From Pecten maximus (Eukaryota): DNA of 64,000 nucleotides. The notes below the pieces were generated by a model that did not search any database, had not been told where the DNA came from, and saw only the letters and a program-made list of their open reading frames with translations. The stretch covers positions 43,400,001 through 43,464,000 of the forward strand of contig NC_047019.1 in assembly GCF_902652985.1 (NCBI RefSeq), written 5' to 3'. Each line of letters starts with the position of its first letter. Within the stretch, counting starts at the first letter, position 1. Positions 11,495 to 41,555 of the stretch are shown piece by piece. Both the position numbers and the translations under genes were made by a program.

Positions 11495-14349
11495 TCAGAA
11501 CTTAGTAGTCTCCAGATTTGCCGTTGGATATTTCCGTTGGAGATCTCCGTTGGAGTGTTCCTGGTATGGCAGACATTGCATGTTTACATTACAAGCAGTT
11601 TCTCTTTTCTGATGTTTTGGGAATACATCTTCAACGCAACAGAGATTTTCTACCTGTTTGTCTGTGTTTATATTTGGCGACACCTTTCGCCCAGGTTTTC
11701 TCTTGACATCCTCGTCCAGTGACCCGTTCGCGTATTCATAGGCTGTGAGGAACGTGCTGACAAATACTGGTATGATGAGGGAAAATAACACAACGCCTGA
11801 TAGAGCACAGATACAGCCAATCAACTTTCCCAACACCGTCTTCGGTACCATATCCCCATACCCTACCGTTGTCATGGTTACGATACTCCACCACCAAGCC
11901 GCGGGAATGCTGGGAAAATCCGATTTCTTTTCAACAAAGTAGATGAAGTTGGAGAAAATGCACATTGTTACCATGACGTACATGACTAGAACGCAAATGT
12001 CTTTCATACCAGTAACAAGGGAATAACGAAGGACCTTAAATGCTTTGATATGTTCTATTGTCCGGAAGAGACGAAATACACGGAACATTTGTAAATAAAG
12101 GAGCAGGTCGTACACCACGGTCATAGTCTCCATCAAATCACTCCGTAAATCCAACAAAATTCTCCCGAAACTGCCAAGGAGAAGGATTAGGTCTAACCAG
12201 TTCAGCACGCCGCTGAGAAACTCTTTTTTATACGGACATGTAATGAGTCTGAGGACGAATTCAACAGTAAAGAATGCTGTTATGACGTGTTCCATATAAT
12301 GATAAACGATATATTCAATGTGTTTTACGTTGTTACGTTTTAAAGATGATGTGAATGAAGATAATTTTTCTTTTGAAGTCAAAATCGTTTCCTTTAAAGC
12401 AGTAAAAATCCTCGCATTGATAGAGTCATCACGTATTATTGTAAAGTTTTGTGATAATAGCGAACTGCTGTTTGTTTTACTATGATTTGCCCCTGGATTA
12501 ATGTTACCACTAGACATTTCATTCGATGCTGGAATTGGCATAATCTGAACAGATCCCGAATGTAGAAGTGTTTGGTTTTTCTGATCCATGGGGTCGTCAC
12601 TACCATAATCAGTATAATCAGCAGGCTTATTATCACCATAGTCCATGTAATCAGCAGGAGGGTCAACCATCTTAGCCACGTAAATTGGCAATGATTGCGT
12701 CACGAACGGACGACAACATTTTGGTATGTGTAAGTAAACGTCTGTATTTCCTACTTTGTACTCGGTTCTTTTTGCAGTCGGCGATAGCCCCGGGCTTCCA
12801 CGTGAAAGTAAACTACAAATAGCGCAATCCACCTTGATAATCATAGGAGAAAACATCAACGGTTTTGGTGTCGTCGTTACGCAATTCATTGTTTTACTTG
12901 AAGGATCTGTATCCGTTGTTGGATTGACTCTCAGATCAGAGACTGGTGTCTGAGTCATGTTCATTGCCAATGCAGACATGTCCTTCTGGACGGTGTCCTG
13001 TTCATCGTTCATGCTAGTCAGAGCAAGATTGGCAATCATCAGCAGTACAAAGGTTGTCGACACATAGAAATACACCTGGAAATATATTTGTCAGACATCA
13101 ATCCCTGGAGTTTATTTATAAATATTACTTTGGTTTTCATATGCATAAGATCTGATATAACTTTCATGACACCACACACTTGTCCGATTCCATTTGTATA
13201 TGTATGTTTAAATCAAACCACTTTTTGCAATTGAAATGTTGCAAGTTGCAATTGCCAATCTCGAATTTTTATGTTTGTGTTATTGTCGATACGGAATGAC
13301 AAACGCGTCTCAAAAAGATATAAGTGATTTCCTCCGTGAAACACTTCATCGTAAACATGAGACTTCGAGTAAGTTTTGATTTCACGTAGATTTGGATTTC
13401 GATAATGCAAAATACTTTAACGTAGTCAACAGTGTAGCGTATAGCCGGCTATTTTTGCCGGTCAAAATTTTTGCGATTTTATTTAAAAAGATTTAAATTT
13501 TAAATCTAATTGAATAAAAAGATCTGGTTATAGGAAGATACTAATACATTATATTACAACAGGAAAGAACAATTATAATTGCCGAAATAACCTTTGATAA
13601 TTAAAGGCGGCTAAGTCGGCTAAGGACTGCGTGCTATAACGATAGTCTTACACCGCTGTTTATTTCGCGGATACTAATTGCCGAATGTCTGATTATTTCA
13701 CAAATCAGATTTTCGCAACTACATCAAAGCCCCGAGAAATAACGAATATATAATCCCTGCAAAAAAACCCCCGGCTATATGGTAAATTGAAATCATGAGT
13801 TATACATCGTAAATGACGGGCCAACCTCAAATCACGACATATCAGCGATTGGACATGCAAATTAGACCGAAGGTGTGGGAAGCAGAGCACCAGATTAACG
13901 TACATTGTACATATATACTGCAATACACATACCCGAAACCTCTGCTATGTTCTCAACACTTAAGTTTACAAATATCTACACCAAATATATTTTGAATTAC
14001 TGATAGAAATATCATCAAATTTTCATATCGAATTTAAAAATGAATACAAATACTAAGTTTATGTGTATCATACTTCTTGATAATTAAATACACTTCCGTC
14101 TTCTATCATGTATTAATTAATATGTATATAGTAGTAACAAAATTACTTTACAAAGTAACAACAGAGATAACATACCTTTGAACACGTTGACTTTCGATCA
14201 CAGTTGACAATACCCCATATTCGTTCCTTTGCCTTCACGTTTCGTCCAGCACTACTGTTTTCTGGTTTCTTGTGCATATTTTCGAACCCTTCGAGCATTT
14301 TCTGATCGTTCACGAAAGCACAGAGCTTGTGATAGCAGCATTTTTCCAG
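11495..14349 (-). pseudogene. Kv-like channel copy 1: intact exon 2 (11495-13075, 526 aa) but 5'-truncated T1 exon (14176-14349); pseudogene or alternative last exon of copy 2
   Basis: Exon 2 encodes S1-S6 with TMTTVGYGD. The exon 1 remnant reads [10 protein letters not shown]...STCSK|GTATGT and is preceded in frame by TAA from GMC intron sequence at the duplication junction. Confidence 0.8.
13435..13784. mobile_element. MITE with degenerate TIRs in the Kv intron (second copy 21016-21364)
   Basis: Left tagcgtatagccggctatttttg, right caaaaaaaccccggctatatggta; TA ends; internal ttttcgc/tttcgcg motifs. Confidence 0.6.
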
Positions 14350-14390
14350 TTATACATCCATCAAATTGATTTAACGATGTATGTTTCCAG

Positions 14391-38565: not shown

Positions 38566-38625
38566 CAACTTTGATAATGAGTCAGTATAAAGGTAACTTC
38601 TTAGTGACCTTCTCTTAAGATAGTG

Positions 38626-41555
38626 TCAAAATTGAGTAGTTTCCATAGTTTCTGTTTTCCGTAGTAGTATTGGATGTTCGTTTGGGTTATGCAACTGTTC
38701 CTTACACATTATGTCAACATTAAGGACCCTTGTGATCTGTTTGTTCTCATTTGAGTTCAGCGTCCCAATTCGCCTTGAGTCTTTACCGTCCTCACCGTCC
38801 CGACAGCCTTCCTCACCATCCTGACAGCCTTTTGCGTATTCGTAGGCTGTGAGGAACGTGCTGACAAATACTGGTATGATGAGGGAAAATAACACAACGC
38901 CTGATAGAGCACAGATACAGCCAATCAACTTTCCAAACACAGTCTTCGGCACCACATCCCCATAGCCTACCGTTGTCATGGTTACGATACTCCACCACCA
39001 TGCCGCGGGAATGCTGGGAAAATCCGATTTATTTTCAACAAAGTAGATGAAGTTGGAGAATATGCACATTGTTACCATGACGTACATGACTAGAACGCAA
39101 ATGTCTTTCATACCAGTAACAAGGGAATAACGAAGGACCTTAAATGCTTTGATATGTTCTATTGTCCTGAAGAGACGAAATACACGGAACATTTGTAAAT
39201 AAAGGAGCAGGTCGTACACCACGGTCATAGTCTCCATCAAATCACTCCGTAAATCCAACAAAATTCTCCCGAAACTGTCAAGGAGCAGGATCAGATCTAA
39301 CAAGTTCAATACGCCACTGAGAAATTCCTTTTTGTTCGGACATGTAATCAGTCTGAGGACGAATTCAACAGTAAAGAATGCTGTTATGACGTGTTCCATA
39401 TAGTGACATAAAACGTTTTCAAAATCTGCATTACTTGCTAGTTCCCGCGCTGAGGTGAACGAAGAAAGTTTTTTCTTAGAATTTGAAAATGAGTTCGTAA
39501 GGAATGTAGTCGTCCAATCCTTGACAGATGATTTAAATATATTTTCATTATTCGTTATGTTTTTTAATGCCATCTTGCTGATGTTTGCACCAGGGCTTGT
39601 TGCATCACTGTATATCTCGCTGGAAGCTGAGTGTGGCGTAACGTTTGTAGCAAAATACCGCGTGCCATTTAATTTCGTCGTTTGGTTCATGGAACTATCG
39701 TTCCCGTAATCATTAAAATTAGGCTTTGGAGGTTTGTCCAAATCATACAAGTCCTGAGTGTAATCAGGGATTGGAGTTATATCCAGATCATATACGTCCT
39801 TGTACTCAGTAGTGTGGTCCAGTATTTCGCTGAATGGTATTACAGTTGATTGTACAATATTAGTCTTACAACATTTTGGCAGGTGTAAGTGTATGTATGT
39901 ATTTTCTACTTCTAGCTTTTTACTTTTATTACTTGGTGACATCCCACGGCTCCCACCGGTTAGGAGGCTGCAGGCAACACAATTTACTCTGATAATAGTA
40001 GGAGTATATCTCAGTGGCATCGGTGTCACGGTACCGCAATTCGCGGACATATTTGAAAAACCTGTAATATTCAATTGATTTGTAGAAGGTAACAGATCCG
40101 AAGTACCAGACGAATTCCCGTCGGGATGCTGCTCGTTATCTTTTACATCGCTCATGCTGGTAAGGGCAAGGACAGTAATCATCAGCAGTACAAAGGTTGT
40201 CGACACATAGAAATACACCTGGAAATACATTTGTCAGGCATTAAGTCTATAAAACCGTGTATACTGCTGTCGAGATTATTAAGTTAATCTATATGTCATT
40301 TTTAATCTTTGAACATTATGTCAGGTGTTCACGAAACAAAAAGAATGTCGTTTGTGAAAATAGATATCAACAAAAAAGAAATCGAACTGAACTACTTTGG
40401 TCATTGTAATAATTTCAAATAAACTGACGTATTGTATAGCAATTTTGCAGGTACAAATGTCATAGGATGCAAAGCCCATACTCCCGGTCGATAGAGTGTT
40501 TGTGACGAAAATACACAGCAGGACTATCATTTTACAACTTATTCCGAAAGAACTTTCAAGCTTGGAGCCATACACCGAACATACATTTATTCTTCCATAC
40601 TCGTACATCAAGCACCACACAGTGAACATACATTGGTTCACCCATACTCGTACACAAGGCCCCACACAGGGAACATACATTGGTTCACCCATACTCGTAC
40701 ATATACTAGTACCTGCCATTACGAAATTGATGGCTCGAGCATTCAAATTTTGGATTATCAGAAAGAAAAGGCCTAAAGAATGATAATGTGATTATTGCCC
40801 GTAAGGGACGTTGAACTGGCCACGAACGTGATGTGAAAACCAATGTTCGTTTTCGCAATTTAATTTTACACCTCAACTCAAGTTTGAAGTAGGTTATACC
40901 CTAACGGAAAACTATGTTTTAAAGGAACTACAAATGTTTAAAGAATATTGATGTAAAAGGCCTTCCTCGAAATAATTGGAACGATCAAAATCTTTTCTCG
41001 TGTAATCTTGATGATTGCAAACCACACAATCTAACAATGGATAATAACCCAGAGTCAAAGCCGTTTTATAATTTGTCCTGCTGTTAGAAAACATACCTTT
41101 GAACACGTTGACTTTCGATCACAGTTGACGATTCCCCATATTCGTTCTTTTGCATTGCCATTCCCAGAATGCCCAGCGCCACAGTTCTCTGATTCCATAT
41201 ACATGTTTTCGAACCCTTTGAGCATTTTCTGATCCTTCAGGAAAGCACAGAGCTTGTGATAGCAGCATGCTTCTAACAGTCTGCTTTTCAATCCCCAGAA
41301 CCGCAGCTCCGTTAAAAACTCGCCCTTGCAGACACTCTTAGGAATGTGAAGCTGCCCGGTATAGCAGTATTCTATCAGAGCCATGGTAGAGTCTTTGGGC
41401 CTCATAATGACGTATTTCGTGTATGTATCTGTCCGGGATGTTGTGTCAAGGAACATTTCAATCTTTGACCCGAAAGTTTTGAGAACAGATTCCACGGGGA
41501 CTACAAACTGATCAGCACCGACTTGGAGAACAGGTTCAATTTTGTCACATACCAT
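38626..41555 (-). CDS. Kv-like channel copy 4 (~683 aa)
   Basis: Exon 1 41555-41097 (153 aa T1, HIPKSVC..CCY), exon 2 40218-38626 (530 aa); intact TVGYGD; same intron phase. Confidence 0.92.
40575..40705. repeat. ~47 bp tandem repeat (about 3 units) in the Kv copy 4 intron
   Basis: gaacatacattggttcacccatactcgtaca recurs three times. Confidence 0.7.

Follow-up and report, generated by a model that had tools for sequence, protein, structure and literature searches.

The linker between the transmembrane segments S1 and S2 in the voltage-gated channels for potassium (Kv channels) is regarded as a short glycosylated connector on the extracellular side, and the S1-S2 domain of the TRPP and TRPML channels is a cap over the pore. 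Here we describe a tandem cluster of Kv genes from the scallop Pecten maximus, in which the S1-S2 linker is a loop of 235-264 residues. The cluster lies on contig NC_047019.1, positions 43,400,001 to 43,464,000; this whole stretch of 64,000 nucleotides, which contains zero N, is called the window, and coordinates refer to it unless stated otherwise. Most Kv channels have one to two N-glycosylation sites on the S1-S2 linker, which favour stability and expression at the surface and influence gating (PMC10178682). The group 2 TRP channels (TRPP, TRPML) contain an extensive, glycosylated, and disulfide-bonded domain between S1 and S2 (PMC7312350), and the molluscan Hv3 proton channels, of which a bivalve species has up to eight members, are reported to possess S1-S2 loops of great and highly variable length (PMC10377628). 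We propose that the scallop proteins are Shaw-like bivalve Kv channels with a T1 domain and a greatly enlarged S1-S2 linker, and that the scallop loops probably form a glycan canopy on the voltage sensors. Literature searches yielded neither a description of a Kv channel built in this way nor any publication on these genes, in agreement with the initial annotation of the window, which knew of no described Kv family with such an architecture. A Kv channel with a scallop-type loop thus appears to be undescribed.

A tandem cluster of Kv genes with large S1-S2 loops

The minus strand of the window encodes three complete two-exon Kv genes, each consisting of a T1 exon and one large exon, and a fourth, truncated copy. 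The initial annotation had proposed four same-strand paralogues with a T1 exon and a large exon each, which is correct for copies 2-4 but not for copy 1, in which only 58 T1 codons are kept. All four large open reading frames (ORFs) match the Pfam families Ion_trans (PF00520, E 1e-32 to 1e-34) and Ion_trans_2, and ORFs matching T1/BTB_2 (PF02214, 30-35 bits with a cut-off of 21.4) are found upstream of copies 2, 3, and 4. The spliced genes were searched exon by exon, the full-length proteins being the database proteins P0002 (683 residues; copy 4), which carries the NCBI name 'Shaw-like', and P0003 (707 residues; copy 3); the exon pieces correspond to prefix and suffix of these proteins. The splice sites between the T1 exon and the large exon are canonical and in phase 0 (donor AAG/GTATGT, acceptor TTCCAG/GTG), and S1 therefore starts with the initial codon of this large exon. 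Hydropathy detects S1, S3, S5, and S6 in all four copies and, in copies 1-3, also S2. Because the loop is located between S1 and S2, it should be extracellular by Kv topology, as had been supposed, and the earlier loop lengths (235, 235, 264, and 248 residues in copies 1-4) and numbers of N-glycosylation sequons (5, 4, 9, and 10) are reproduced. The genes comprise the following features:

41097..41555, minus strand: copy 4 exon 1 (153 codons) with start codon, T1 (BTB_2, E 1.8e-7), HX5CX20CC zinc motif, and T1-S1 linker; GT donor after AAG; P0002 prefix
38626..40218, minus strand: copy 4 exon 2 with S1, loop, S2-S6 with TVGYG filter, and C-tail with the end ETTQF; Ion_trans E 5e-33; acceptor TTCCAG/GTG; P0002 suffix
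38626-40230, minus strand: large ORF of copy 4 (ORF list)
39409..40152, minus strand: copy 4 S1-S2 loop, 248 residues, 10 sequons (ORF translation)
30149..30595, minus strand: copy 3 exon 1, T1, 149 codons; BTB_2 E 5.3e-7; P0003 prefix
27959..29635, minus strand: copy 3 exon 2; ORF, Ion_trans, P0003 suffix
27959-29647, minus strand: large ORF of copy 3 (ORF list)
28778-29569, minus strand: copy 3 loop, 264 residues, 9 sequons
29174-29386, minus strand: copy 3 cysteine module
21756..22202, minus strand: copy 2 exon 1, T1, 149 codons; BTB_2 E 2.4e-8; donor GT
19076..20656, minus strand: copy 2 exon 2 (Ion_trans), identical in extent to the large ORF of copy 2 (19076-20656, ORF list)
19886-20590, minus strand: copy 2 loop, 235 residues, 4 sequons
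20234-20449, minus strand: copy 2 cysteine module
14176..14349, minus strand: copy 1 exon 1 remnant, last 58 T1 codons, cut by the duplication junction
11495..13075, minus strand: copy 1 exon 2, 99% identical to copy 2, identical in extent to the large ORF of copy 1 (11495-13075, ORF list)
12305-13009, minus strand: copy 1 loop, 235 residues, 5 sequons

The loop as coding sequence

Orthologues that include the loop are encoded by Argopecten irradians (P0004, P0006, and P0007) and Mizuhopecten yessoensis (P0005) and cover 86-99% of the large exon. The position of the cluster is conserved in these species, in which TauD/GBBH is followed by the Kv genes and then by a GMC oxidoreductase, and the window holds traces of both flanking genes. 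The syntenic Kv genes, three in tandem in Argopecten and one in Mizuhopecten, have the same two-exon structure. Gene position and the sequence of the tail link copy 4 to P0007, copy 3 to P0006, and copy 2 to P0004. The reading frames of the loops are open over 213-299 codons in all seven genes of the three scallop genera despite saturated synonymous sites (synonymous divergence, dS, >1).

Transcript data were contigs from public runs of two studies, whose RNA nature is presumed; both their restriction to exons and their size of about 90 Mb would be in line with transcriptomes. Contigs of the runs X1, X2, and X5 cover the copy 4 loop at 39412-39620 and 39695-40175 with at most one mismatch each, and none of these presumed-RNA contigs on copy 4 shows a joint across the loop or lies in the intron or upstream. 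Two longer contigs (X1, 1.4 kb; X2, 2.0 kb) with a depth of 15-19 have copy 1/2 sequence, and not that of copy 4, at the listed sites and span the loop side, S2-S6, and then the tail. At the sites differing between copies 1 and 2, the X1 contig equals copy 2 at six of seven, while the X2 contig is a mosaic. On this basis the genes are real and are apparently transcribed with the loop as part of the exon.

It could be argued that an in-frame intron was overlooked and taken for the loop, or that the genes are pseudogenes, in line with the truncation of copy 1, which is possibly an assembly duplicate, and with the thin RNA evidence. However, the frames have remained open in seven genes although dS exceeds 1, the contigs on the loop have no joint and none is found in the true intron, the cysteines and sequons are conserved, and the NCBI models P0002 and P0003 retain the loop. 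Such an artefact is thus largely refuted, and we regard it as extremely improbable.

Composition of the loop

The AlphaFold model of P0002, built with a 66-sequence alignment, shows a well-modelled T1 and S1-S6. About 140 of the 248 loop residues have a predicted local distance difference test (pLDDT) score below 50, and the loop is thus predicted to be mostly (about 60%) disordered. It can be divided into four parts:

40009-40152, minus strand (P0002 176-223): part 1, disordered, ~45 residues (AlphaFold)
39823-40008, minus strand (P0002 224-285): part 2, small beta unit corresponding to the four-cysteine module, ~50-60 residues, pLDDT 54-78 (AlphaFold)
39544-39822, minus strand (P0002 286-378): part 3, disordered, ~95 residues, glycan-rich by prediction (AlphaFold)
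39433-39543, minus strand (P0002 379-415): part 4, helix running into S2 (AlphaFold)

Part 3 is rich in Asn, Ser, and Thr, evolves almost neutrally, and contains more sequons than its composition predicts. Taking the seven loops together, 59 sequons are observed compared to 31 expected from composition shuffles; the excess has P<=0.02 in four of the seven loops, and one site is retained in six of them. Comparison of eight copies of the cysteine module, taken from three genera, shows three Cys, one Val, and one Thr as invariant positions, and the four cysteines presumably form two disulfides. The Argopecten protein P0006 has two modules in tandem (L008:11181-11591), in both of which the CC pair has become CA and a new Cys has appeared three residues after the CxxC. 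If modelled in isolation, the module has four strands at a pLDDT of 64.5.

The initial annotation had taken the loop for a receptor- or adhesion-like ectodomain and had suggested HMMER, Pfam, and Foldseek-type searches with it. Such searches matched nothing outside the scallop channels. Three loops had no Pfam match at E<=10. Among 1.84 billion representative proteins, a profile of three loops retrieved scallop Kv proteins and nothing else, and searches of the whole P. maximus genome with the loop and with a module profile retrieved the four copies of the window alone; both results support the proposed lineage-specificity of the loop. A search of the ESM Atlas with the loop gave no usable match, and neither profiles nor folds of known extracellular binding domains (Ig, EGF, lectin etc.) matched the loop. 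The fold search with the cysteine module retrieved nothing better than E 2.2 with Foldseek and Z 2.0 with VIA-align (48,161 chains). The assignment as a receptor- or adhesion-like ectodomain is therefore not upheld, given a loop that is mostly disordered, has no Pfam match, and whose sole piece predicted to fold, ~50-60 residues at low confidence, has no fold match.

Nevertheless, a small folded unit could still act as a receptor, if the loop, and above all the cysteine module, bound a ligand, the matrix, or a partner and signalled through the pre-S2 helix to the voltage sensor, which would make these proteins ligand- or contact-modulated Kv channels. This would be in agreement with the conservation of the module across three scallop genera and its doubling in P0006, with the conserved helix joining it to S2, and with the S1-S2 domain at the same position in TRPP and TRPML (PMC7312350). 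However, a recognisable domain or fold is missing from the loop, the tiny module would be a poor lever for force between ~45 and ~95 disordered residues, and it is present in no other P. maximus gene. Including the substitution data presented below, we consider a receptor or adhesion function rather improbable.

Two further candidate features of the loop were rejected. An extra transmembrane segment was suggested by a 19-residue stretch of copies 1/2 with a Kyte-Doolittle value of 1.64, but this stretch is strand 1 of the cysteine module, in copies 3 and 4 it does not reach the threshold, and a single added segment would invert the voltage sensor. Tyrosine sulfation of an acidic Tyr-rich stretch was dropped because the acidic context is missing from all three Argopecten loops.

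Concerted evolution of the channel core and divergence of the loops

Nonsynonymous divergence (dN) and dS were estimated by region according to Nei and Gojobori. The Pecten paralogues are 92-95% identical in S2-S6 but only 25-48% in loop and tail, and loop and tail have a dS >1 in every Pecten comparison. Among the three Pecten paralogues the dS of S2-S6 is 0.15-0.23 and that of the T1 exon 0.36-0.44, while the respective values are 0.88-0.89 and 1.3-1.8 among the three Argopecten paralogues and about 1.0 and 1.1-2.8 between species. At the DNA level a homogenised tract extends from the region preceding S2 to S6:

38828..39484, minus strand: homogenised tract in copy 4, ~660 bp, with ~90-92% DNA identity to copies 1-3
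28181-28853, minus strand: counterpart in copy 3
19289-19958, minus strand: counterpart in copy 2
11708-12377, minus strand: counterpart in copy 1

The loops and tails flanking this tract did not align between the paralogues at the DNA level in the blastn search of the window against itself. The core and T1 of the Pecten genes are thus homogenised by gene conversion, which has spared loops and tails, and the cluster is a clear-cut example of concerted evolution in a mosaic pattern. Gene conversion specific to Pecten therefore accounts for much of the near-invariance of S2-S6, beyond constraint alone. The initial description of an almost invariant S2-S6 next to a strongly divergent loop and tail is thus right in the contrast, but the invariance is inflated, and the same conversion has exaggerated the constancy of the proposed potassium pore module. 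Purifying selection on the core is nonetheless real, because the core dN is just 0.12-0.16 among the Argopecten paralogues, which are not homogenised.

A domain-wise comparison of dN/dS, which had also been suggested for this cluster, gives 0.34-0.64 for the cysteine module, indicating purifying selection. The dN of the loop is 0.56-0.95, even between orthologues, and thus far above that of the core (0.02-0.16), the loop outside the module changing six to eight times faster than the core. The pairwise dN/dS gives no sign of positive selection in the loop, which is a further point against a receptor function; the persistence of paralogue-specific loops despite gene conversion elsewhere in the gene speaks in favour of one.

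Channel core and phylogenetic placement

The filter sequence TMTTVGYGD is invariant, and the match to Kv1.2 has an E-value of 1.6e-39. In the alignment to Kv1.2, the equivalents of F233, E236, and D259 of the charge-transfer centre are present. In S4, the positions R3, R4, and K5 are basic, while R1, R2, and R6 correspond to Leu, Gln, and Glu, respectively, and the PVP hinge of S6 is changed to IIP with only the second proline retained. From the loss of R1 and R2, the Glu at R6, and the IIP in place of PVP, a weak or shifted voltage dependence would be expected. The Leu/Gln at R1/R2 of S4, the IIP in S6, and the motif K-L-x-[ST] before S2 are common to a whole bivalve clade described below. 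The C-terminal ends (11498-11512, 19079-19093, 27962-27976, and 38629-38643, minus strand) are PDZ-ligand-like. ETTx[F/I] or a close variant ends six of the seven scallop tails, which are otherwise divergent, and resembles ETDV, with which canonical Shaker (gene L006, chromosome C10) ends.

The zinc motif HX5CX20CC of T1, which is common to Shab, Shaw, and Shal and missing from Shaker, can be read in the T1 exons. The best solved structure for T1 is that of Aplysia Shaw (3KVT, E 1.3e-7), and the T1 structure matches were to Shaw, Kv4, Kv2, and Kv3, with no Kv1 T1 among them. In a quick maximum-likelihood tree of 45 proteins with a reference set that was not curated, the scallop group (100% support) is placed inside a clade of 17 rows from the pteriomorph bivalves Mytilus, Pinctada, Saccostrea, Ostrea, Tegillarca, and the scallops (99% support). 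The clade forms a long branch next to Shaw-like groups, outside Shab, Shal, and Shaker-like channels and not nested in canonical Shaw. The phylogenetic check that the initial annotation had proposed against these families thus separates the clade from Shab, Shal, and Shaker-like groups, while membership inside Shaw is not shown by the tree. The P. maximus genome holds at least 43 Kv-type S2-S6 loci; outside the window, the closest relatives share 45-51% identity.

The loop has at least 69 residues in the 14 of the 17 clade rows that were measured, compared to 12-35 residues in ordinary Kv channels; the measured members other than the scallop proteins have 69-135. The remaining three rows (P0008, P0011, and P0017) have very long loops by sequence reading. 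In related bivalve Kv channels altogether, the length of the S1-S2 loop ranges from 66 to about 500 residues, and the sequences are unrelated. According to these sequences, the enlarged S1-S2 architecture extends beyond the scallop cluster. A P. maximus paralogue on chromosome C16 (L005; G000:C16:21878500-21882500, ORF 1009-3189) has a loop of ~470 residues. It is of low complexity, with an abundance of His, Gln, Lys, and Glu, and carries repeats of the QHQ type as well as a cluster of sequons close to S2. The loops of P0017 from Tegillarca granosa and of P0011, a related transcript, are ~500 residues long and contain dozens of cysteines, and may represent a folded ectodomain of another kind. 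A Pfam search of the large loops from Tegillarca, P0008, P0011, and the paralogue on C16 identified no domain.

This diversity leads to the main rival of a canopy, namely that the loops are tolerated expansions with little function. S1-S2 would be a permissive site, expanded with sequence of low complexity through slippage and drift, and module and sequons would just keep the loop soluble and able to pass the quality control of the endoplasmic reticulum. It would explain why the loops of sister groups are unrelated (low-complexity in the C16 paralogue, Cys-rich in Tegillarca) and without Pfam domain, why the dN of the loop exceeds that of the core six- to eightfold, and why the S1-S2 length of molluscan Hv3 is similarly variable (PMC10377628). 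However, the loop is large with an open frame in every scallop orthologue examined, sequons are more numerous than expected from composition, and purifying selection acts on the module as well as on the pre-S2 helix. Therefore, we consider mere tolerance unlikely, although it has to be taken seriously.

Possible role of the loop

By analogy to ordinary Kv channels, the likeliest role of the loop would be that of a glycan-rich canopy on the voltage sensor. The S1-S2 linker is enlarged many times over in this clade, and four loops per tetramer would build a bulky glycan canopy, which is anchored on the voltage sensors and sterically covers them. The canopy might act in the same way as ordinary S1-S2 N-glycans, on folding, surface expression, and gating, but at a larger scale. 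Because T1 and S2-S6 are nearly identical and loops and tails distinct, heterotetramers with mixed ectodomains would be allowed.

Several observations weigh against a canopy. Three of the seven loops do not have more sequons than their composition predicts, and the dN/dS of the loop of roughly 0.35-0.7 is near the value for a barely constrained spacer. The lack of a fold match for the cysteine module is only weak evidence, because its models are of low confidence (pLDDT 54-78). The transcript runs are only presumed to be RNA, their depth on copy 4 is just 2-3, and the T1 exon of copy 4 is uncovered, so that the RNA support is thin. In addition, three S4 charges are missing and T1 is divergent, and the proteins may serve as silent or modulatory subunits instead of autonomous channels.

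There is a small chance that the four-cysteine module and a rigid pre-S2 helix form a true sensor, which couples an external ligand, the matrix, or a contact to the voltage sensor and would be the Kv counterpart of the TRPP/TRPML domain. In that case the interchangeable cores and T1 domains would lead to heterotetramers with combinatorial ectodomains, and the principle would have arisen repeatedly in the voltage sensors of bivalve Kv channels and perhaps of Hv3. Independent of the role, a clade with S1-S2 loops of 70-500 residues next to a potassium pore that is otherwise canonical offers a natural test of the amounts of mass, glycan, and charge that the outer face of a voltage sensor tolerates. 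It could tell whether S1-S2 mass tunes gating, trafficking, or toxin access.

Copy 1 and the surroundings of the cluster

Copy 1 originates from a tandem duplication identified by the blastn search of the window against itself:

7265..21929, no strand assigned: tandem duplication with the units 7265-14348 and 14348-21929, origin of copy 1

The units are 98.4% identical across 6.2 kb, plus flanking pieces. The duplication junction is located inside the T1 exon, which is why copy 1 retains just its last 58 codons, and the remnant is preceded by a stop codon and unrelated sequence. The reported heterozygosity of the sequenced P. maximus animal is 1.71% (PMC7191990). The divergence of the units (1.6%) equals this value, and copy 1 could thus be an assembly artefact. 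Copy 1 is therefore a 5'-truncated duplicate of very recent origin or else a haplotype left uncollapsed. The unequal lengths of the two units result from a 684-bp sub-repeat (15060-15743 against 15737-16420, 99.4%).

Each duplication unit contains a GMC oxidoreductase-like stretch. One is the end part (14380-14547) of the plus-strand ORF 14272-14547, which resembles the C-terminus of a GMC oxidoreductase, and the second one starts near 7265. This fits the GMC gene flanking the Kv cluster in Argopecten and Mizuhopecten. The plus-strand ORF 51466-51744 contains a Cys-x-Cys-x2-Cys stretch and resembles a GBBH-like N-terminal exon, which fits the TauD/GBBH flank of the other two scallops. In addition, the window contains four satellite-like tandem arrays at 31063-32697, 46235-48666, 54164-55735, and 59951-61147 with periods of 31, 39 (or 117), 34 (or 202), and 35 bp, respectively. 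The first of them sits between copies 3 and 4 and is a source of long spurious ORFs.

Comparison with known systems

With Shaw (Kv3) channels, the scallop proteins share a T1 with HX5CX20CC, a six-transmembrane core with TVGYG, and an extracellular S1-S2 linker with N-glycosylation, which is predicted in the scallop proteins. In contrast to Shaw, this linker comprises 235-264 instead of about 34 residues, R1 and R2 are absent from S4, R6 is Glu, and PVP is replaced by IIP. Among known structures, the full-length model matches Kv4.2 and Kv3.1. The other members of the pteriomorph Kv clade (such as P0013, P0021, P0009 from Saccostrea, P0017 from Tegillarca, and the C16 paralogue) have the core signature in common, but their loops of 66 to ~500 residues are unrelated to the scallop loop and do not contain the four-cysteine module, and their genes are outside the tandem cluster.

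TRPP and TRPML are also six-transmembrane tetrameric cation channels with a large insert between S1 and S2, although they belong to another channel family with another ion selectivity. Their domain is a folded alpha/beta domain of ~200 residues, whereas only ~50-60 residues of the scallop loop are folded by prediction and the rest is disordered. A polycystin (TOP) or mucolipin fold was not found in the loop (best Foldseek E 2.2, best VIA-align Z 2.0), which is weak evidence given the low-confidence model.

The molluscan Hv3 channels of the AcHv3 type resemble the scallop proteins in their hugely variable S1-S2 length. They are proton channels of another family with neither pore domain nor T1, and the likeness is based on the description in the literature. 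The parallel suggests that molluscan voltage sensors might generally tolerate or use an expansion of S1-S2, and together with the Hv3 loops the scallop channels would point to a general feature of molluscan voltage sensors.

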